64,000 nt of DNA from NCBI GenBank assembly GCA_000708835.1, contig DF237391.1, forward strand, positions 12,971 to 76,970, given 5' to 3'. Below, piece by piece: positions 50,818 through 62,709 of this stretch (positions are counted from its first letter, which is position 1; every line of letters starts with the position of its first letter). The position numbers and the translations under genes were made by a program. The DNA comes from Klebsormidium nitens. Lineage: Eukaryota > Plantae > Klebsormidiophyceae. Below the pieces are notes generated by a model. It was not told the DNA's origin. It saw nothing but the letters and a program-made list of their open reading frames with translations, and made no database searches.

Positions 50818-53800
50818 CTACATGAACGGCGACGCCTTCATCAAACCAATCACTGCGATCACGTAGCCCACCTGCTGCAACCGCGTCAGCTGCCGGATGC
50901 CCTGCACGTGACGCAACACCCGCAGCATCTGCCACCGTCGTTTCAGCAGGTACCGACGGATCGGCTTGTTCTCCAAGCCCTCCGCTCTTCGCTGCTTCCG
51001 TCTCGGGCTCCGGGGGGGCAGATCGAGCCGCAACAGCTGCTTCTGCCGAGGGGAGCTAACCGCCAGCGCCCCTAGCGCCGACGCTTCGCTGCCCTTCTCG
51101 AGTGTGAGCTCGTCCCCGTCCGAGTCTTCGTCTTCGTCAAACAACCGCCGCAGGTTCAGGAAGCTCTCGCCGTCCGCACCCCCGGCGAAGAGCCCCTCGT
51201 CCTCCGCAGCCGAGAAGAGATCCACCCGGGAGCCGCGCCGGCTGAGAGACCGGATCTCGTTCGCCAGCTTCTCTGCGAGGGGCCCCATCGAGAGCGGCGT
51301 CTCGTCCTCGCCCTCCTCTGCGACCCGCTCTAGTTCCTTCTCCACCGACTGCTCCAGGCTGGCCATATCCGACACCTGCTCCCGCTCGCCACCCGACATC
51401 CCGTCGCTCGAGTTGCGCAGCACGCACCGTACGAGCTCCTCGAGCACTCCCCCCTCGCGCATCTGCTTGCACGCAAACAGGCCCGCAATGTACGTGTGCA
51501 TCATGTGCTCCTCCATCTGGTCCACCTTGCGCCCGAAAAGCATGCTCAGGTGCTGCGAGCCAAACTGTGCGACGAGTTCGCGGTCCCGGATCGGCTCGAG
51601 GGATCCCTCCTGCATATCGAGCATGACGACATGCCCCGCCGAGGTGTAACTAGACGCGTGCGGGGTTGGGTTGTAGACCACCGCACTGACCATGCTGGTT
51701 AGGAAGGCGACCAGGCGGCGGCGGACGGATTTGGGCACGGGGGACGCGGCGAGGCGCACAGTGACGCTCAGCGGGAGGCGCGTGAAGTGCTGGATGGCGC
51801 CCAGGGCGATGTCCATGAGGAAGCCGGCGTCGGCCACGGCGTCCATCTTGTTGAGGGCCTTGGAAACGGCGTTGATGACGGGCATGAGCCTGGAGGGAAG
51901 GGATTGGGGTCAGCATTTTCAAACCAGGCGCAAATTGCTGCTGCAGAACTATTGGTAGCGATGATGAGGGAAGGGAACTCTCCCCTTAATCTCTTCCAGA
52001 ACAAACTGCTGTCATATTTTTTGAAAGAAGAACTGTATCAAGTCAGCTCTGAAGCTCCTAAAATCCTGCTGCGTTCCTGATCTGAGCATGTGCAGAGAGG
52101 GGTTGGAAGCAGAGCTGCTATCAAGTACATGTGTTTGCAAACCATATTTGACATGAGGACTCCCCCTCCTGTGGAACCTCTGAAATCCTAGAACGCACAG
52201 AGCTGGAGTCAAAACAGAAGAAGCTCAGAGCATCTTGAAAACTGTCTAAACTAGCACTGTGAGCAGGGCTTCTTGACCATGCTAAGTGTGTTAGCTCAAA
52301 CAGATCACAACTTGAGCAAAACGAGGCAGCTGAGACCTCACCTTGGCACCGGGTCATTCCTGGACACAAAGTGATAGAAGTGCCCTCGGTATGCTGTGTT
52401 CAGGTACTCAGCGAGCTGCGGGTTTGCAAACATCGGCATCCCAAAGGTGAAGCACTGCAGCTGCTGCCTGTACTTGCTGTCTGGCCCGTGGCTCTCCAGC
52501 AGCCGCAGCATGAGCAGAGACGCAACTGCACCCCCCATGGAGTGGCCGGTGAAGACAAGGTCGTAACCGAGGTCCAGCAACCGTTGCAGGTGCTCCAGAG
52601 GGATGCCCTGCAAGAAGGGAGCAGCTGAACTGAATAATGGAGCCACAAACTGCTTTTCCTGAGTGAGTGGGGTCATCTGAGCACAAAATGAGGGAATCTG
52701 CCTGATCCATGACCAGAGGCAAGACCGTTGAGATTCATGTACAGAGTGTGTGCCTGCTGCTCTCCTGCATCTCTCTTGATCCGCAAGGAGTTGATCTACA
52801 TTGCGCCCTCACTGCAAGCATTTGAAGAAACCCAACCACACAGCCAAGTGCTGGTCACACCTTAACATCACCAGGCACTCTGGTGTCTTGCCATCTACAC
52901 AGTCTTCCATACCATAGCTGTGTCACTAGGAGCTTGAACAACCAATCGAGTATGGTATGCACTAAGGAGCTCAATGCTTGAGCTGCTATTGGTAAAGCTG
53001 ACAAAAATCTGCGCCTTTCCAACATTTGCGTTTTGCACTGCGAGGCAGATATCACAAGCTCTTTGGAACAGGTTTCTGCAGTTTGATAGATCAACAGCAG
53101 GAAATCCAACGTGAATTACTTGACGAACCCAAATGATAGGTAAGCTGTGAACATGACCATGTAAAGAATAGTGACTGGAAGAAGTTAACAAAGGGACTGT
53201 CAACGAACTGTGCACTCCTTGACTAAGCTTAGTTAAGCTCTGTTGTCCTCAATGTAGAATCTGGCCCAGAGTAAGAATGGAGCTAAAGCCAGGTTGTGTA
53301 ATGAGTTACGGTGTAAGAAAAAATCATTACAGAACCATTTGTCTGCTTGATCTTGTGGAGACTGAAACCAACTCACGCTTGCTTATCCCTTACCTCAAAT
53401 AATCATTGCAAAAGCTTGCTAACCAGAATCTAGTGACCGGATGACTCTCATCCTGACTTGATAGACCCCACCCAAAAACCTCGCAGTCAAGCATAGGGAT
53501 TCAGTGGACTGAGGGGAGTGTAGATGTGGACCCTAGCAACCTAGCAATCATCAAGGTAGGGTCAACCAAGGTGCATCATTAATGATGGTCAACAGAGACC
53601 CTAAACCAGAGGTAAGCGAAAAGATGCTCTCTCAGTACAGGCTGATCATTCTATCCTTGTCATTCAAATGTCCCCAATCATCCATGTAAGCTACAAGAAT
53701 CAGCGCTTTGATCCCGTCATACCTGTGCCCTCGCCCAAAACCCTCGGTGTGCCATTGCGCCATTCGCTTCCATTCCCTTTCCGCAGGCTCGACCTAGACA

Positions 53801-54154
53801 CTCTAAAGCCTGCTGCCTGATGCTAAAATCAGTCACAATGTCTCTCAGGGTCTTCGTACCCCTAAGCGACACAACAATGTGCCCATGGGTACTTCTCGCC
53901 AAAACCAGCCTCTGAACCGAACTCTGATACTCTCTTGGCAGAGGCAAGAACTCAAACTTGCCTACAGGTTGCTCATACAGACGGTTGAGCACGGCATCCC
54001 TGTTCTTAGCCTTTATCTGGTACACGGCCTTGCATAGGACGGCAGCGTCAGAGACCTTCTCCTTCCAAGTTGAGGAGGACGGTGGGGGCAGTCCTGGTGG
54101 AGGGAAAGGAGTAGGTTCCACCATTTCAGCCTCTCTGAAAGGAAGGACCGCCAT
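50818..54154 (-). CDS. Class-3 lipase (alpha/beta hydrolase) with long acidic/basic C-terminal extension; 3 exons
   Basis: VVSLRGT..D..TD, AHRGF, nucleophile elbow FTGHSMGG, FTFGMP, Asp motif RNDPVPR, His motif EHMMHTY. Junctions RAQ|GIP and PR|LMP are phase-consistent; stop TAG 50818-50820. Confidence 0.88.
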
Positions 54155-54317
54155 AGCGCGCTGGTGGGTTCATCAGCACGCCTTCAGCAAAGAGTTCCTC
54201 CCCCGTCTTTGTTTGTGGCGCTGCGAGTACGGTACGAGACTTTTACTAGGAAGTCTTCCTACTGGCAAGACTCTGTTACAGCACATTTCAGGCATGCTGC
54301 ACGATTCATCACTTAGT

Positions 54318-54388
54318 TAGGGCCTAAGTTAGTCCTAATCAGGCCCTATTTAAACCATTAAGGAGCCCTAATTAGGGCCTAATTAGGC
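54318..54388. repeat. Cluster of short palindromes/inverted repeats
   Basis: TAGGGCCT (54318-54325) ... AGGCCCTA (54341-54348); perfect palindromes GCCCTAATTAGGGC (54365-54378) and GCCTAATTAGGC (54377-54388). Confidence 0.85.
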
Positions 54389-54737
54389 ACACTAAACCAA
54401 GTTTTTCGGCACATGGAAGAATATGTCAGACGTTCACTATACGATGCATGTCGACGTGCTTACATGTACCATGATCGTGTGACATTATCCAAGCAAGTCA
54501 TTCAATCTCTTTTTTGATTTTGCCCTCTGCAGTATACCGAAAGAAACCATTTTGCAATCTGTACAATTTGACTAGCGTGTGTCACCGTTAAAAGTATTAT
54601 ATGCTGTCACGAATGGAGCTCCACTGCATCACGAAAGTCAAGACTCCGACGAACCCTTAAAGTGTTTATGGTTTCCCCTCTATAGAAACTACTCTACTTC
54701 ACCATCTCTCCGGCGCGGCGATTTTCTGGCCCCCCTC

Positions 54738-55642
54738 TCAAGCCGCTCCCTTCCCCCTCTTTCCACCCTGCTTCGACGTTTCAGCCCCTCCCTGAGGCCC
54801 ATGCGCAGCTTCCCGAGCCGCGCGCTCTGCAGCCATTCGCGTCTGGCGCTGCAACTCCGCCTTCTGGGCCCGTTTAGCATCCTTTGTCGCCCTCTCTCTT
54901 GCCTCCCGTTCGATTTGCTTTGCGGACTTCCACCTCTTCTCGTCCGCTTTGCCGGGGTCGTACTCGACCTTCTCACGTTTGTGCCCGAGGCCGTGCTCCA
55001 CGGCGGCTTGCAAAGGCAGAGTGTTGTCTTCGTTCCGAATTCCGCGGATCCTGCGCGCTAGGTCCAGGTCCTTCTTCTGAAGGGTCTTCCGCTTGCCGTG
55101 CGCCTGGCAGAAGATCGCGTCACCGAACAGCCCTACGACAAAGTCCTGACTTGCCTCCAACAGAGCGTCCAACGCCGACACCTGCCACCTGGAGAAAAGC
55201 TTGCCAACTCGGTTTAGCAAGTGCTATGATAAAGGGGGCACTACATTCATTCCGATATTCCCAAACCGACATTAGATGTTGCAACGTTTTTCCCCCGGGC
55301 TGCCACGCTGGAACAGTGGACCAATGAGAAAAGGGGACCTGCAACCTGCGGTACCCAGTGCTTTTACGGGCAAATTCTCTACGGTCCCAGTCCCCGTACG
55401 TACCGTCGTAAATCACCGGTCGCAAGCAGTCGCCGAGTCGGCAGACACTGCGTACTCTGATTCAGTCTGAACCTAGGCTGAAATTTATCGCGCGGTGCGT
55501 AACTCCGGGGATTTTCGGGCTCAGTAGTGAAAACTCCAAGTCTGACATGCGGCGATTCGAATTCACTCGAACGTGCAGAAAGATTCGCATATTGGCTTGC
55601 CTCTTCCCCCTGGGAAGTGGGCAACCATCGGTATGGGTTCAA
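54738..55642 (-). CDS. Histone H3-like histone-fold protein with ~100-aa basic/charged C-terminal extension; spliced, start uncertain
   Basis: Exon 55188-54738 reads WQVSALDALLEASQDFVVGLFGDAIFCQAHGKRKTLQKKDLDLARRIRG, aligning to H3 [48 protein letters not shown]. It has a strong acceptor ttttctccag. Upstream putative exons give APRDKFQPR|EFARKSTGYR|R with matching phase-2 junctions. Confidence 0.8.
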
Positions 55643-56249
55643 TCGGCGCTGTATGCGGGGCAGCGCGGGCCCCGGCGCTCGGCCTGCTTGCGTTGACCGG
55701 GTTCGACGATAAAACGTACAGTACGGTGTTAAAAAGTTCCCGTATAATGGCGACAGGGTCCGTCAGACTGGGCCGCGCGTCGCGGTGCGGATTGCGGTTT
55801 AGAATCGAACAATTTGGTGGAAGTTTCTGCTGCTCTGAGTCGTCGTCGAACTAGACCGCGCTTAGCTGGGCGGGGTATACCTAATACATTATCTACCCGG
55901 CCTACCCTGCGTAGGTTGACAATCTATCTGTGCTTTGACGCTAGTGATGAATCTGCGTTGCATGCATGTCGTGCATGCTACCTTATGGCGGTACGTACTT
56001 TGCGGGCGTGTGAGACTCCGTCTTATTATTAGCGGTAGGTACCTCGACGGTTCGTTTATTTCAATGATCGCTTGAAGCGCGGCTAAGACTTCTGTACGAC
56101 TTTCGACTGCTGTGCTGTTTCTATGTCGATGGAGTTCTGTTCGTGGCTTCTGTGCGAGTCCTGTCAACTATTTGTAGCTGCTTTTTCGGCGCCTTTCTTG
56201 CTTCACTTTGACCTGCTTAAACTTCTGCTGCGAAAGCGTGATCTCGTCA

Positions 56250-59200
56250 ATGGCGTCGCCTGCTGATGATGAAGATAGATATGGGTCGCAGGTATTGTTA
56301 GGCGACGAAGTCTGCGCAACCGCGCTTGATGGTCGCTTCGAAAGTTGCGCAGGTACAGTTATCAGCTGGGAAGGCAAAGAAGCAGGTTTTTCTATTCGAG
56401 TGGCAGTGCCGCCTTCTCAGGAGGGAGCTGTATTGAGCGGTGTACAGGCATGCGAGATGGCATATGTAGTGCTTGTAGAAAACTGTACAGATAATGAGTC
56501 GGGTGAAGCTGCGTGCTCTGAGGAGCAGAAATCTGGCAAGTTAGATATGATCCTGTGTCCTTGGAAGCTGCACTGTACGAACAAAGTCCTGCCAGATGCG
56601 CTTAGTTGTCAGGTCTGCGGGGGCAGCGGGAAAAAGCGTTTGAAAGAATGTCCAGTCTGCACGCAGAGAGCATTCAATCAAGCACACCTTTGTGGTAATT
56701 GCAAGTACAGATTTGCGGAGCATCCTGGGTGGTTTAGGGGTGTTAGCAAGACGAAGCGCTTGCAGCAGCCATTCGAAATCAAGTGTTCTTTTAGCAACAA
56801 GCAGTATCATTACGGTAAATTCGACTCTGAAGAGCAGGCTGCTAGAGCGTATGATTACGTAGTTGAAGCGCTCGTGGCGGAAGGCGCTTACCCGAGGCCT
56901 CTCAACTTTCCTGACGGGTTGGCTATGGATGCAGCGGAGCGGGCGTATGCTGAACAATGTTTGACATCAATTAGAGGTAAGATGATGCAACGCCGAAGAG
57001 CACCCAAAACTGATGAGTCTACTTCGTTTCCGAGCCGTACGCTTCCCTTTGTAGTGTACGATGAACAGGAAACTGGTCGTGCAAACTATCGCGCTCGACT
57101 CAAGGTGGGAACTTGTGTTTATCAGCTTGGTGAGTATGAAACTGAAACGGAAGCTGCTTTAGCGCACGATTTCGTCGCGAGACAAGCACCTGGAAGCCAC
57201 AAACTTAATTTCCCTGCTTCTGATCAGTTAAAGCTGTGTTCTGAGGTGGAGAAGCGTTTGGAAAGCGTTATCTCGACGATGATGCCGAACGCTGGTTGTT
57301 CGGCAAATGACATCGCCTCGGAGCCTCTTGAAGACATAATTCGCGAATTTCGTCAAGCAAGTGATGAAGGACCTGTATTTGTTTGCACTTGCTGCCGCCG
57401 TACTTGGTTTTCGCATAGTATGCGAATAGTTAGTGACACTTTGAGGAATCGACTTGAAACTGATGAAGAGCTTGCTTGGTTGACCGGTCGCAAATCTGTA
57501 AACGATGAAGAGTGGATATGTTCCACATGCTATCGGTATGTGGCCAAACGAAGATGTCCACCTGGTGCGCCGCCTCACCAACCAGATTTTGCGACTCTGG
57601 ATCCTGTGTTACAAGATTTGACGAGTATCGAGAATGATCTGATTGCTTTGCGACTGCCTTTTATGAAATTACGTGGTTTGCCGCCATCGACGGCAGGAGG
57701 CTCTTCTAAAGCAGGTCAACTAGCTTTGAAAGGGATGGTAGTCAACGTTCCTGCCGATTTAAATAAGATTCAACTCGCTCTTCCAAGACTTATTGATTCA
57801 GAAGGAACTATACCCGTAGCTATCAAATACAAGTTGAAAACTAAGGCTTGTTATCGAGCGGCGGAGAACGTGCGCCCAGCAAAAATACGTGATGCTTTAA
57901 TTTTCCTGACAAGACAGCCGACTCTTTGGCACAAGCCTACTCTTTGGTATGATGCGTCTGTATCGATACGTTCTGACTGGCTTAACGAATGCAGTAAGCC
58001 AGCGAAAGTGACTATCTGCGACTCTCTGCCATGTACGGCCTCGCTTGGTCTTGAAAGCGGTCCGTTCGTACACGAACCAGCACCTATTACTTCGTCGTCT
58101 GATTCGGAGCCTGAAGAAGATGAGGACGGTCAGCTGCCGCCGGAAGAGACTATGCTGCAAGACGCGCCTGCGTATGTTAGTGCTCATTTATTCGGTGTGA
58201 ATGTGGCACCAAGTGAAGGTCAGACCCCAATTGGTATGCTTCAAGATGTGTATGCCGAAGAGAAGGCGTTTCCTTGTCTATTCAACGGATATGCTAGGCC
58301 TAAGGGCAATCAAAGTTACAGCAAAGTATGTAAATTTGAACTCAGTAATGAAGATAGGCGATTTGCACGTCATCCAAGCAACATATTTTTCAAACTACGA
58401 AAACTACAAGCGAGTTTCGTGTCTGGAGAATCATGGGTACGGTTACGGAAAAAGAAATTGCCAAATAATATATGTCCTACTGCTGGAGAACTTCGAAATC
58501 CAGCCGTTCAAACTTCTCTGGTATCACAGAATGTAGGCTACCGGGACTTTAAAACGCTACGCGGTAGTCCGGAGTATAACAGGCAAGGAAAGAAAGAAGC
58601 TTTTGCGATGATACGACAGTTAGGCCCGTTCCAAATTTTTGCTACTTTTACTATGTCTGAAACTCGTTGGGGTGTTCTATTGCGAACTTTGCACAAATTG
58701 GCAACTGGAGAGTTCATTTCTGAGGCTGCCGCTTTACAGTTACCTTGGTTGGATAAAGCGCGACTAATCAGAGATGATCCTGTCACAGTAGCACGTTGTT
58801 ATTGTAATCGGAGAGATCACCTGATCCATACACTTCAAAAATACTCGACTTTGATTGGACACGTCACAGACTTCTTTTGGCGCGATGAATTTCAACAACG
58901 TGGCTCGCCGCATACGCATGCTGCTTTCTATCTGGCCGATTCTCCTAAATTTGGAATCGACGATGATACAGCGGTCGTTGCTTTCATTGACGAACACGTG
59001 ACGTGTTCGTCTTCGGCTGCATCTCCGAGTGATCTGGCTGGGCAGTACCACAAACATAGGCGTGGCTACTGTCTGAAACGTAGCACTTCTGGAGGCAAGT
59101 CTGTTTGTCGGTTTGATTTCCCCCGGCCACCTTTGCATGAGACAATGATTTTGAATCCGTTGCCGGAAAGTATTTCAGACTTTAAAAAGCAGGAATGCGC

Positions 59201-62200
59201 GGAGTTCTCGAGACGAATAACAACAGGCTTAAGGCGTCTGGAGTTGGACGAATCAAATCTGCATCGTTTGTCGTGTTCCGAGTTCTATGCTAGCTTGTCT
59301 TTGACACCCGCAGAATATGTACTTGGTCTGCGGTTCAGATTGATGAAACCAGCGGTGTTTTTGCGAAGATTACCTTCTGAAATTTACATCAATAACTATA
59401 ATCCGAAACTGTTGAAATTGCTGGGAGGTACGAATATGGATATACAGTTCGTCCTAGAAGCGTACGCTGCGGCCAACTATATCAGTTCGTATATGATGAA
59501 AACAGATTATCGGCTTAGTAAACTCTTAGATCAAGCGTATGCCGACGCTCGGCGAGGAAACATGGAACTTCGCCGAGGAATAAGGTATGTGGGCATGGCT
59601 CTTCTAAAAGGTCAGGAAATATCGGCGCAAGAAGCGGTGTACGGATGCCTGGGGCTTCCGTACAGGCATAGCTCTCGACAACACATATTCATTCCAACAA
59701 GCATTCCAGAAAATCGTACTTTATTGATCAAAACCGACAGTGCCCTGCGACTCCTTCCGGAAGACTCGACGGAATGTGTTTATTCCAACATAGTCGACAA
59801 GTACGCGATGCGTTTACAAAATTGGAGCATGCAAGGCTCTGAAAATTTAACTTTAGCAGACTTCGCTGCGTGGTTTGAAGCCTCTAAGAGCTCTCCAGAT
59901 CTTCCGGAAGAAGTAAATGATGACGCTCTAGATGACACAAGTGTGAGAAATCAAGAGCCGGCACTTGACTTTGACGACAGCCGTGACGTGTCTGGTTCTG
60001 TCAGATATCATAAGCGCGAAAAAGCGAAGATCATACGGTACGCGAACTTTAAAAAATCTGAGGATCCCGAACTATATTACCGCGAGCGTATTATGCTGTT
60101 TCTCCCGTGGGCATTTAGCGGAGACAGCTCAATGGCTCTGAGCGCAGCTGAAACCGATATACTACTGGCTGGCTATGACACTTTCGAAGCCCGCTATGAG
60201 GCTGAGAAAGACGCCATTGAAACTGCTGCAGCAGTCTACGATTATCACTCTAATATTGTCTGGGACGAGGTCGAAAGATACGCAGAAAACAAGGCAGCTG
60301 AAGACGCAGACATCTTCGGTGATACTTCAGAGGATCCGTTCATCCGTAATTCAAACGTGACCTCGGAAACAGGTGCGCCTGTCGAGTTCACAGTATCACC
60401 AGACTTCGTGCCGTCTGCAGCTTCGTCCGCTGTAGAGAAGCTACCCCATTCACAATTTGTACTGCCTGATGATGACTTCCGTGCACAAATGCGGTCGCTT
60501 ACGACAACGCAGCGATCGTACGTGGATCATGTCTTACATTCGTTAAAGTTCCCGGGTACTCGAAAATTTGTCGAATTTCTTACCGGTGGGGCTGGAACGG
60601 GTAAAAGTCTGGTTATTCGATGTATCACACAGCTGGTTATTAGAACGTTCAGCGGAGCTATGGGTTTGCAGCCAACTTCTTTGAAAATGTTGTTAGCCGC
60701 GTTCACGGGAAGTGCCGGCTTCAATATAGATGGTGTGACGATCCACTCCGCTTTTAAACTTCCGCTGTATGCGAAACTAGAATCTTACATTCCAGTCGCT
60801 GGTGAAAAAAAAGCGACTCTTAGAGACGCATACACAGATCTCAGAGGGTGCGTCATTGACGAAATCTCAATGACGGGTGCTAAATTGCTACAGATGATCA
60901 ACTATCGCTTGCAAGAAATATTCGAGTCTGTCGATCCGTTCGGCGGACTTCCGATACTCTTTGGCGGTGATTTGTTTCAGTTGCAACCGCTTTGGGACGG
61001 CTACGTCTTCGAGGGAGTTCGTAAAAACGGAGTACTGAGTTGTTAGCAATTTGTGGGAGGAGAACGTCGAAATGTTTGAACTCGTTCAAATCATGCGGCA
61101 GCAAGAAAACTTGGAATTTGCCGAAGCGCTTAACCGGCTGCGGACAGGCAGTCATACTGCAGCGGATTTAGCGTTGTTTGAAACGAGAGTCGTAGATCCG
61201 CTGAATCTGCCAACAAGTTATTCTGCTTTTGACAAGCATATTTTTGCCACTCGCAAAAAAAGGGACGCCCATAACAGTCTGGTTCTGCGCCTTACGGGGG
61301 GTTCCGAATGTGAAATTCATGCACGAGATGAGCCGTTATCATACGGTGCTTCAACAAAAGACCGCGAACACTTTCTGTTTAGAGCTGCGAGTATGCCGGA
61401 TACAGAAACGGCAACATTGTTTGCGGTTTTACAGCTAAAAGAAGGACTCTTGGTCGAAATTACTTGTAATACAAATAATCCGGACGGATTGTACAATGGA
61501 GCTACGGGATACATCCGGCGGTTCCACGATCTCGGTGGCCGCGATCCGCACGTTATTTGGGTAGAATTTTTAGAAAATAGAATTGGGCAACAAACTCGTG
61601 AACAATGGGCTTCTCTGTATCAGCAGTGCCCGTCTATTGACTCTGCGTGGACACCAGTATTCCGAATTTCTCGAACCTTTCAAGCCACTCGAAGAATTGA
61701 AAGTACAATTTTGAGAACCCAGTTTCCTTTGCGACCTGCAACCGCCGGAACCTTCTACCACACACAAGGTATGACTTTGCGGAAGGGCTCTCTCGATTTC
61801 AGGGGCGCCTCGAAGCATCACGTGGACGCAGGTCGTCACTACGTAGGTTTGAGCCGGTTTCCTGACTTGAATCAGCTATTCATACTAGATCCTGCTTTCG
61901 ATGAGATTATAGTAAGCTCTAAGGTACTTAAAGAAATGGCCCGTCTTCGGCAACAAGCGTGTGTGATCCCATGTATTCCACAAGTATCTATCAGTCCTGG
62001 GAGCGATCGAGAATTGCATTTACTTGCTCACAACGTGCGTTCTTTGCGTCTTCATGCTTCTGACATATTTTCAGATACTAATTTCCAACGCAGTCACATA
62101 ATTGTCTGTACAGAAACGCGGGCGTCGCCCATGTGGGACTTTTCCTCGCTGGAACAGCCTGATTTCGATTTATTCCGTGCAGAGGCTAATCCATCTGGGC

Positions 62201-62709
62201 GAGATGGTTTCGACAATGTTTTGGTGTACATATCGAAGAGCGGTCGAATGCTAAGCGGCACCGTTCATTCTGCCTTCTCTGATTGTCATTCATAGGTGTT
62301 GTGCGTGCATGTACGCGGCCGTCCTGATCCTGATTTCTATCTCATAGCAGTGTATAGATCACCATCTGACTTCCAAATCGACCGTTTTTTGGAAACCGTG
62401 CACTCGTTCATTGCTAACGTGATTCAAAGAGCGCCTACTTCTTCCCCCTCATTCGTATGTGCAGGAGACTTCAACATAGACCTCCTAAAACCTTCTGGTG
62501 CAGCTAGCCGACTTATGGACATTATGCGTTCTTTTAATGCTCAATTGTTGAACTCGTTGCCGACTACGAATCAGGGCGCTCTTCTCGATCACATCTGGGC
62601 ATCGTCATCTCTAGCAGGCGCAGGAACAACTAGAAACTTGGAGGCGTATTGGAGTGATCACTGCCCAGTGCACTCCACGTTTCGTTGGCACGAGTCTGAG
62701 TCCAGGTGA
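56250..62709 (+). pseudogene. Rep/Pif1-helicase/AP-endonuclease polyprotein with N-terminal Zn ribbon and two AP2 domains; frameshift near 61040-61050 and in-frame TAG at 62293-62295
   Basis: Zn CQVC..CPVC..CGNC; AP2 x2; CTCC...CSTC and DLTSIENDLIALRLPFM..LKGMVVNVP (Helitron N-terminal block); Rep FATFT, EFQQRGSPHTH, YISSYMMK; helicase GGAGTGKS, AFTGSAG..IDG.TIHS, IDEISM, GGDLFQL, IMRQ, QFPL, YVGLSR; EEP HNVRSL, CTET, YRSP, GDFN, LDHI, SDH. Confidence 0.9.

Follow-up and report, generated by a model that had tools for sequence, protein, structure and literature searches.

Does a transposon in Klebsormidium nitens (Klebsormidiophyceae) encode its own histone? The question is raised by a locus at which a histone H3-like open reading frame and the Rep gene of a Helentron lie in divergent orientation. 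A transposon with a histone of its own would be striking, and the original prediction favored it, proposing a transposon-borne mimic that packages or marks element DNA, resists silencing, or targets centromeres, with a host variant beside the insertion as the alternative. We analyzed the locus within a window of 64,000 nt (assembly GCA_000708835.1, contig DF237391.1, positions 12,971 to 76,970 of the forward strand; all coordinates given for this locus count from the first letter of the window), and the evidence contradicts a transposon-encoded histone.

The open frame encodes half of an H3 fold

The H3-like frame lies on the minus strand, where 160 codons are open from 54738 to 55220. Its match to the Pfam Histone profile (PF00125; E value, 3.3e-14) is confined to profile positions 74 to 122 of 122, and its match to solved H3 chains (~3e-11) corresponds to residues ~82 to 135 of H3 in the PDB. 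The frame encodes alpha2 and alpha3 of H3, followed by a tail of ~98 residues past RIRGIR that ends in GGKRGKGAA, in agreement with the C-terminal tail of ~100 aa originally described. Alignment to the solved H3 chains also bears out the individual residues that had been singled out: C110, H113, and LARRIRG of the H3-H3 bundle are retained, and two positions differ from H3, namely, F84, replaced by W (RWQ), and T107, replaced by A (GDAIFC). An AlphaFold2 model computed with seven family sequences as input is weak as a whole (mean pLDDT, 62; pTM, 0.24) and includes one long helix at residues 100 to 139 (block pLDDT, 86 to 91); a helical conformation of the charged C-terminal tail is a reasonable prediction from this model.

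Considered as part of a gene, the frame is the last exon of an H3-like gene (54738 to 55223, minus strand; stop codon at 54738 to 54740), comprising alpha2-alpha3, a conserved extension, and the charged, putatively helical tail. It retains the residues of alpha2 and alpha3 that are specific to H3. It does not contain the complete PF00125 fold (alphaN plus alpha1-L1-alpha2-L2-alpha3), nor does it have the start codon and uninterrupted coding path of a translatable gene, the upstream exon being absent. Because half of the fold is missing, the first codon is preceded at a distance of two codons by an in-frame stop, and the earliest ATG of the frame is codon 127 (both seen in a three-frame translation), the H3-like fragment in the window cannot make a histone-fold protein, and it is presumably without function. 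There is likewise no basis for the normal loop 1 length once attributed to it: loop 1 is absent from the window.

A narrow family of H3-like genes

A word search with the window frame recovered nine relatives (P0001 to P0009), of which P0009 is an ordinary H3. The closest, P0001, derives from an environmental assembly and is 95% identical to the window frame; P0002 is the K. nitens protein KFL_009800010 (86%); and P0003 through P0006 share 55 to 61% identity, with P0006 (60%) being a K. nitens protein annotated as “histone H3.” P0007 and P0008, both from Logan assemblies, align over shorter spans (83% identity over one-third of the query, comprising the tail only, and 73% over 28%, respectively). 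In all family members, RIRGIR is followed by a conserved extension, LPLQ..VEHG..Y.P..RWKP.KQIEREERE, and then by a variable charged stretch, such that the family is characterized by an extension of ~45 aa plus a charged helix; alignments place alpha2-alpha3 and the LPLQ..VEHG..RWKP.KQIERE extension in the window frame as well. Over the last exon, distant members compared in pairs have dN/dS values of 0.17 to 0.21, and comparison of the window with its relative at locus L003 gives 0.18; these values, near 0.2, show that the family is under purifying selection.

In a profile search of 1.84 billion representatives, only three clusters match both the fold and the tail at an E value of ≤1e-30; a fourth match at this threshold proved to be an artefact in which ordinary H3s are strung together. 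In metagenome and run assemblies, a few remoter H3-like proteins also combine a charged C-terminal tail with a WK.P motif. As judged from these searches, the family is narrow and lineage restricted (green-alga, Klebsormidium-type).

Intact members consist of an upstream exon encoding alphaN and alpha1 (..RRYKPGTLALREIRKYQKST..RLVRELCD..), an intron of ~170 nt, and the last exon. At L003, the two exons are joined in frame by a splice model with donor TTCAG/GTATGC, a 168-nt intron, and acceptor ..TTTATCATAG; in this canonical GT-AG model, the predicted splicing yields a loop 1 that is ~18 residues longer than that of H3. We located at least eight copies or fragments of the family at seven other loci. 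L001 and L002, the loci of P0002 and P0006, are paralogous blocks of ~7 to 10 kb with ~85% identity and contain convergent H3-like gene pairs: two H3-like genes are arranged in this manner in L001 and three in L002, and L005 has the same convergent pair.

Several further features of these loci were observed. The convergent (tail-to-tail) pairs combine two subtypes, one with a short N-terminal part and one with an N-terminal part of ~300 aa (L002, 3700 to 10990; L001, 2490 to 5800; and L005), and the pairing is kept between the paralogous blocks and in an environmental relative. The third H3-like copy of L002 is situated immediately upstream of a Gypsy-type pol, and Gypsy or Copia genes are found near H3-like copies in L001, L002, L009, and L010; when the family was considered as retrotransposon borne, no common element structure was found around these four loci. 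Two of the metagenomic H3-like proteins with charged C-terminal tails, P0168 and P0176, are encoded within 2 to 3 kb of genes of LTR retrotransposons (gag, protease, RT, and RNase H; RVT_2), at L010/L011 (10001 to 10300) and L009 (10001 to 10444). Two deposited gene models appear to be wrong: that of P0002 (L001, 1063 to 3388) omits the alphaN/alpha1 exon, its splice junction falling midway through alpha2, and that of P0006 (L002, 10001 to 10988) translates a portion of the last exon in the wrong frame, in a copy that is frameshifted. Two Logan assemblies (L007, 385 to 848; L008, 444 to 911) contain an isolated, frameshifted copy of the last exon in another sequence context; exon-only fragments of the family thus occur outside the window too.

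The window copy is an internal gene fragment

The gene had originally been drawn as extending to 55700, but 55221 to 55700 encodes no N-terminal half of H3 by BLASTP, tblastn, or HMM search. Its best upstream frame matches H3 with a BLASTP E value of 0.35 and in the wrong register, and the likeness of ARKSTG.. and WQPGG.. in this stretch to H3 is superficial and not significant. Exon-1 peptides of three family relatives had no tblastn match in the whole window, and an alphaN-alpha1 HMM applied to all stop-to-stop pieces in the six frames of the 64 kb gave a best E value above 1, with no match near the locus. The apparent in-frame continuation ..APFIIAL is conserved intron sequence immediately before the acceptor, and a tiny intron or frameshift linking both frames is ruled out by the real exon 1 and 168-nt intron of the relatives.

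Alignment with intact copies instead identifies 55224 to 55238 (minus strand) as a 15-nt intron remnant with its acceptor (..TTTATCATAG), at the end of which homology stops. On the other side of the exon, 54421 to 54737 (minus strand) is homologous to the 3′ untranslated region (3′UTR) of the relatives at L001, L002, L003, and L005 by blastn and alignment; this part amounts to ~310 nt, and its similarity to intact relatives ends at 54421 to 54427. The DNA similarity of the window to these four loci is limited to the interval from 54421–54430 to 55237–55238. Whereas L001 and L002 remain alike past both edges of the fragment, the window diverges from them there, and whereas L001, L002, L003, and L005 run on into the intron and exon 1, the window does not: the upstream exon (..RYKPGTLALREIRKYQKST..), joined via the intron of ~170 nt, is present in L001 through L005 and L007 and absent from the window. 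The window also has 4 to 5 extra bases just after the acceptor relative to these genes.

By these alignments, 54421 to 55238 is an internal fragment made up of 15 nt of intron, the last exon, and the 3′UTR part. Because it includes intron sequence, the copy was made from DNA and not from mRNA. Its coding part is 96% identical to L003, and it is derived from a host parental gene. Of the suggestion that a host variant lies next to the insertion, descent from a host H3-like family thus stands, although what remains in the window is a truncated fragment and not a variant gene.

Copy number and junctions

Public sequencing runs were used as assembled contigs only, so that depths are rough, the label “RNA” is guessed, and neither strand nor transcript ends can be read from them. 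In X1, a DNA run, the flanks of the fragment are single long contigs (53600 to 54450 at a depth of 22.7 and 55638 to 59500 at a depth of 17.5), whereas 54421 to 55238 is represented by short contigs at depths of 96 to 178. The loose ends of the X1 contigs at 54421 and 55238 lead into sequence resembling the 3′ flank and the intron of the relatives, and a loose end at 55238 in run X5 likewise leads into the relatives' intron. One X1 contig over 55134 to 55238 is letter-identical to the window and then continues into an intact intron. Based on the X1 depths and loose ends, the genome holds several near-identical, apparently intact copies of the gene. The window copy differs from the multi-copy genomic version at 4 of 241 nt (~98% identity), and a frame that remains open over 160 codons is to be expected in a copy this similar to its parents.

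The remaining intron and exon 1 are replaced in the window by an unrelated repeat, repeat X, at 55240 to 55593. Repeat X is not H3-like: it has no histone signal and no protein or RNA family match, it matches none of the fetched loci and nothing elsewhere in the window, and an Rfam search of 54000 to 56400 returned nothing. Its X1 contig has a depth of 85, versus 17.5 for the Rep region, and ends exactly at 55240, and other copies of the repeat carry a 13-nt insertion at 55521. A unique contig covers the left junction of the fragment, at 54421; the junction at 55238/55240 is spanned by none of the listed contigs. As far as these comparisons go, the window holds a recent derivative of part of the gene, adjoining repeat X.

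The Helentron and its 5′ end

The frames to the right of the locus (56250 to 62709, plus strand) encode a Rep, a PIF1-type helicase, and an AP-endonuclease, and their Pfam matches (Helitron_like_N, PIF1, and Exo_endo_phos) identify a Helentron-type transposase. The best outside relatives of the element are Helentron-like proteins of marine invertebrates, at ~35% identity. With the Rep core as the query, the best relative is 54% identical and is accompanied by 177 bp of upstream DNA; L006, a related algal Helentron with 47% protein identity, also has the OB-fold gene, and the 177 bp upstream of its Rep start contain no H3. A word search with Rep residues 1 to 450 found no closer Helentron copies, no exact match to the OB-fold frame is on record, and metagenome scans with the Rep N terminus and with the H3-like frame gave no matches. 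By contig depth, the copy in the window is single-copy. Its frames shift at 61046/61051 and contain an in-frame stop at 62293 to 62295; because L006 has breaks at comparable positions, the interruptions may represent introns and not decay.

The H3-like frame and Rep are divergent, as originally described, but the distance from the 5′ end of the exon (55223) to the Rep ATG (56250) is ~1.03 kb and not ~600 bp. Within this interval, the homology to repeat X halts at 55593, directly after a TT, and is followed directly by a 16-nt imperfect palindrome (55593 to 55627, plus strand; −11.7 kcal/mol; z, −3.2; matched by 0 of 200 shuffles), a candidate for the 5′ subterminal palindrome of the element. 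In this region, two RNA-type contigs, each from a different study, have only the short blocks 55588 to 55605 and 55703 to 55723 in common with the window, and the single-copy X1 contig begins near 55638. Published Helentron ends have subterminal repeats of 12 to 15 bp, palindromic in some families, at 2 to 4 nt from the 5′ terminus, and insertion occurs between Ts (PMC4067079; PMC11417382). The stop of repeat X, the palindrome, the shared short blocks, and the start of the single-copy contig are circumstantial indications that the 5′ end of the Helentron most likely lies near 55590 to 55594. Since the 3′ end is beyond the window, the pairing of terminal repeats falls outside the present DNA; a search for repeats linking the 5′ region with the rest of the element produced nothing convincing.

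We therefore regard the H3 fragment as probably external to the Helentron. The relatives lie elsewhere with no Rep nearby, which does not support the transposon-borne histone originally proposed: tblastn with the Rep, helicase, endonuclease, and OB frames found no match on L001 and L002 (within 10 kb), L007, or L008, and L003 through L005 resemble the window at the DNA level in the H3 fragment only, with no Rep. Between the 5′ end of the lipase-like gene described below and the H3 fragment, 54312 to 54392 contains a cluster of telomere-like motifs in head-to-head orientation, including two occurrences of TTAGGGCCTAA and, at 54365 to 54378, the perfect 14-nt palindrome GCCCTAATTAGGGC. This cluster is found nowhere else in the window and, as a hairpin, is no better than chance (z, −1.75).

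Transcription and the flanking host gene

RNA-type contigs from two studies cover the fragment (X5, 54407 to 55077; X9, 54653 to 55148). At 54828, 54867, 54945, and 54957, the four positions that distinguish the window from the multi-copy version, both carry the letters of the window, and the X5 contig extends into the 3′ flank of the window copy itself, ending at 54407. Given these window-specific letters and the copy's own flank, low-level transcription of the window copy, or of one identical to it, is probable, apparently yielding a noncoding or pseudogene RNA. The depth of RNA-type contigs is ~9 to 10 on the fragment versus 136 to 216 on the neighboring lipase-like exon; none lies on 55373 to 55569, between the H3 frame and Rep, and none joins the H3 exon to upstream sequence in the arrangement of the window. 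Opposite the Helentron, the fragment is flanked by unique host DNA: a class-3-lipase-like gene occupies 52338 to 54161 on the minus strand, and its first coding exon (53722 to 54161), spliced at 53722, is covered by RNA-type contigs of two studies at depths of 216 and 136.

Within 54388 to 59500, contigs of a further run, X19, carry C>T or G>A changes at numerous cytosines of the Rep region; the H3-like repeat, where X19 contigs are very deep, lacks such changes. The pattern looks like that of bisulfite-treated DNA in which the H3-like repeat is methylated and the Rep copy is largely unmethylated.

Origin of the fragment

The history that we consider probable is that 54421 to 55238 is a young, 5′-truncated DNA copy of a multi-copy Klebsormidium-type H3-like gene that lies in the flank of the transposon. 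Upstream of the acceptor, the H3-like gene would have been replaced by repeat X (55240 to 55593), followed by the Helentron; an insertion or rearrangement may have broken an H3-like copy within its intron, or a partial DNA duplication may have generated the truncated copy, the order of these events being one that we infer. What counts against this explanation is that, compared with its closest relatives, the fragment breaks off at both ends, as also happens when transposons capture genes. The same feature underlies an account to which we assign a clearly lower, yet still appreciable, probability: that the fragment is inert cargo inside the Helentron, whose 5′ end would then lie to the left of 54421 (e.g., at 54312 to 54392), with both the H3-like exon and repeat X having been captured. 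A piece with two cut ends that adjoins a second foreign piece forms the sort of patchwork typical of captured gene fragments, its intron sequence implies copying from DNA, degenerate fragments from two histone genes are on record in a Culex Helentron with eight copies (PMC4067079), and the palindromic motif cluster at 54312 to 54392 is unusual. The contig breaks, the TT, and the subterminal palindrome, however, indicate an element end near 55590; the motifs at 54312 to 54392 have a z of −1.75 and are absent elsewhere in the window; no second copy of this element, single-copy by contig depth, shows the cargo moving along with it; and no H3 exists in the 177 bp upstream of the Rep start of L006.

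The join at 55238/55240 could also be chimeric, with the real H3-like copy being intact and the Helentron residing elsewhere. Both sides of the join are multi-copy (depths of 103 and 85), no listed contig piece spans it, and the X1 contig that is identical to the window over 55134 to 55238 leads into an intact intron; but a single base (55239) separates the two repeats, which have no common overlap, unlike the usual mis-joins of assembly graphs, and the contig of repeat X ends exactly at 55240 while the junction at 54421 sits on a unique contig, making an assembly artefact improbable. It is more doubtful still that the fragment is Helentron cargo whose transcript is put to use, either through RNA cross-talk with silencing of the H3-like family or through a tail-only peptide initiated at the internal ATG; if true, it would be the green lineage's first histone variant captured by a Helentron to affect the chromatin genes of the host. 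Least credible of all is a working, transposon-encoded H3 variant, divergent from Rep, that packages or marks DNA or directs the element to centromeres. The open frame of 160 codons, the H3-H3′ interface residues, the CenH3-like substitutions, the RNA-type contigs over the frame, and the purifying selection on the family all speak in its favor; however, the frame lacks alphaN, alpha1, loop 1, and a start codon and has an in-frame stop upstream, the intact relatives are situated away from any Rep, no RNA-type contig lies on 55373 to 55569, and the youth of the copy (~98% identity to the multi-copy version) explains why the frame is open. With half of the fold, the start codon, and the upstream exon missing and no relative beside a Rep, the idea of an intact transposon-borne histone mimic is not supported.

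Relation to known systems

The young truncated copy that we favor has published counterparts. Helentron-Cq-32A of Culex quinquefasciatus carries degenerate fragments of two histone genes and has eight copies, the only such case according to its authors (Thomas, Vadnagara & Pritham 2014, PMC4067079). Both systems combine a Helentron-type element with partial, nonfunctional histone sequence from a host parental gene; but the Culex fragments are inside the element and present in eight copies, whereas the window fragment is single at its junction and probably outside the element, and the parent is a canonical histone in Culex but, for the window, an H3-like variant that is divergent and extended at the C terminus. 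In Dothideomycete fungi, transduplication of histone H3 by hAT elements has produced H3-like copies that mostly match the last exon only (PMC6710886), and a further source includes hAT-linked H3 copies in Pyrenophora (PMC3538342). The likeness lies in truncated last-exon H3-like copies scattered with transposon DNA, with the original family under purifying selection; the fungal copies, however, are transcript derived (without an intron) and number in the hundreds inside hAT elements, whereas the window copy retains intron sequence and has an origin at the DNA level.

CenH3 (CENP-A) is resembled by the window frame in the W at H3 F84, the A at T107, and the retained four-helix-bundle residues, and by the intact relatives in what seems to be a lengthened loop 1 (according to the L003 splice model). 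In contrast, CenH3 is encoded by one or a few genes and has a complete fold, including loop 1, without a long C-terminal extension; the H3-like family is multi-copy, as seen from contig depth and from the copies and fragments at other loci, it has the extension of ~45 aa and the charged helix, and its window copy is without loop 1. A single-copy gene that is syntenic in relatives and clusters with CenH3, the outcome named beforehand as arguing against a transposon-borne histone, is not what the multi-copy family presents either. Among annotated proteins of K. nitens, KFL_009800010 and P0006 share the last exon and the tail with the window (86% and 60% identity), and their loci, unlike the window, keep the intron and the alphaN/alpha1 exon, with no Helentron within 10 kb.

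The capture of histone fragments by transposons has already been published, and the window adds an ordinary truncated paralogue: it is another histone fragment in or beside a transposon, or less than that if the fragment is simply flanking DNA. For annotation, the locus is a caution, in that an open H3-like frame beside a Rep gene is not a gene. Of greater interest is the intact H3-like family from which the fragment descends, with its conserved C-terminal extension, multiple copies, convergent pairs, transposon-rich surroundings, and purifying selection.
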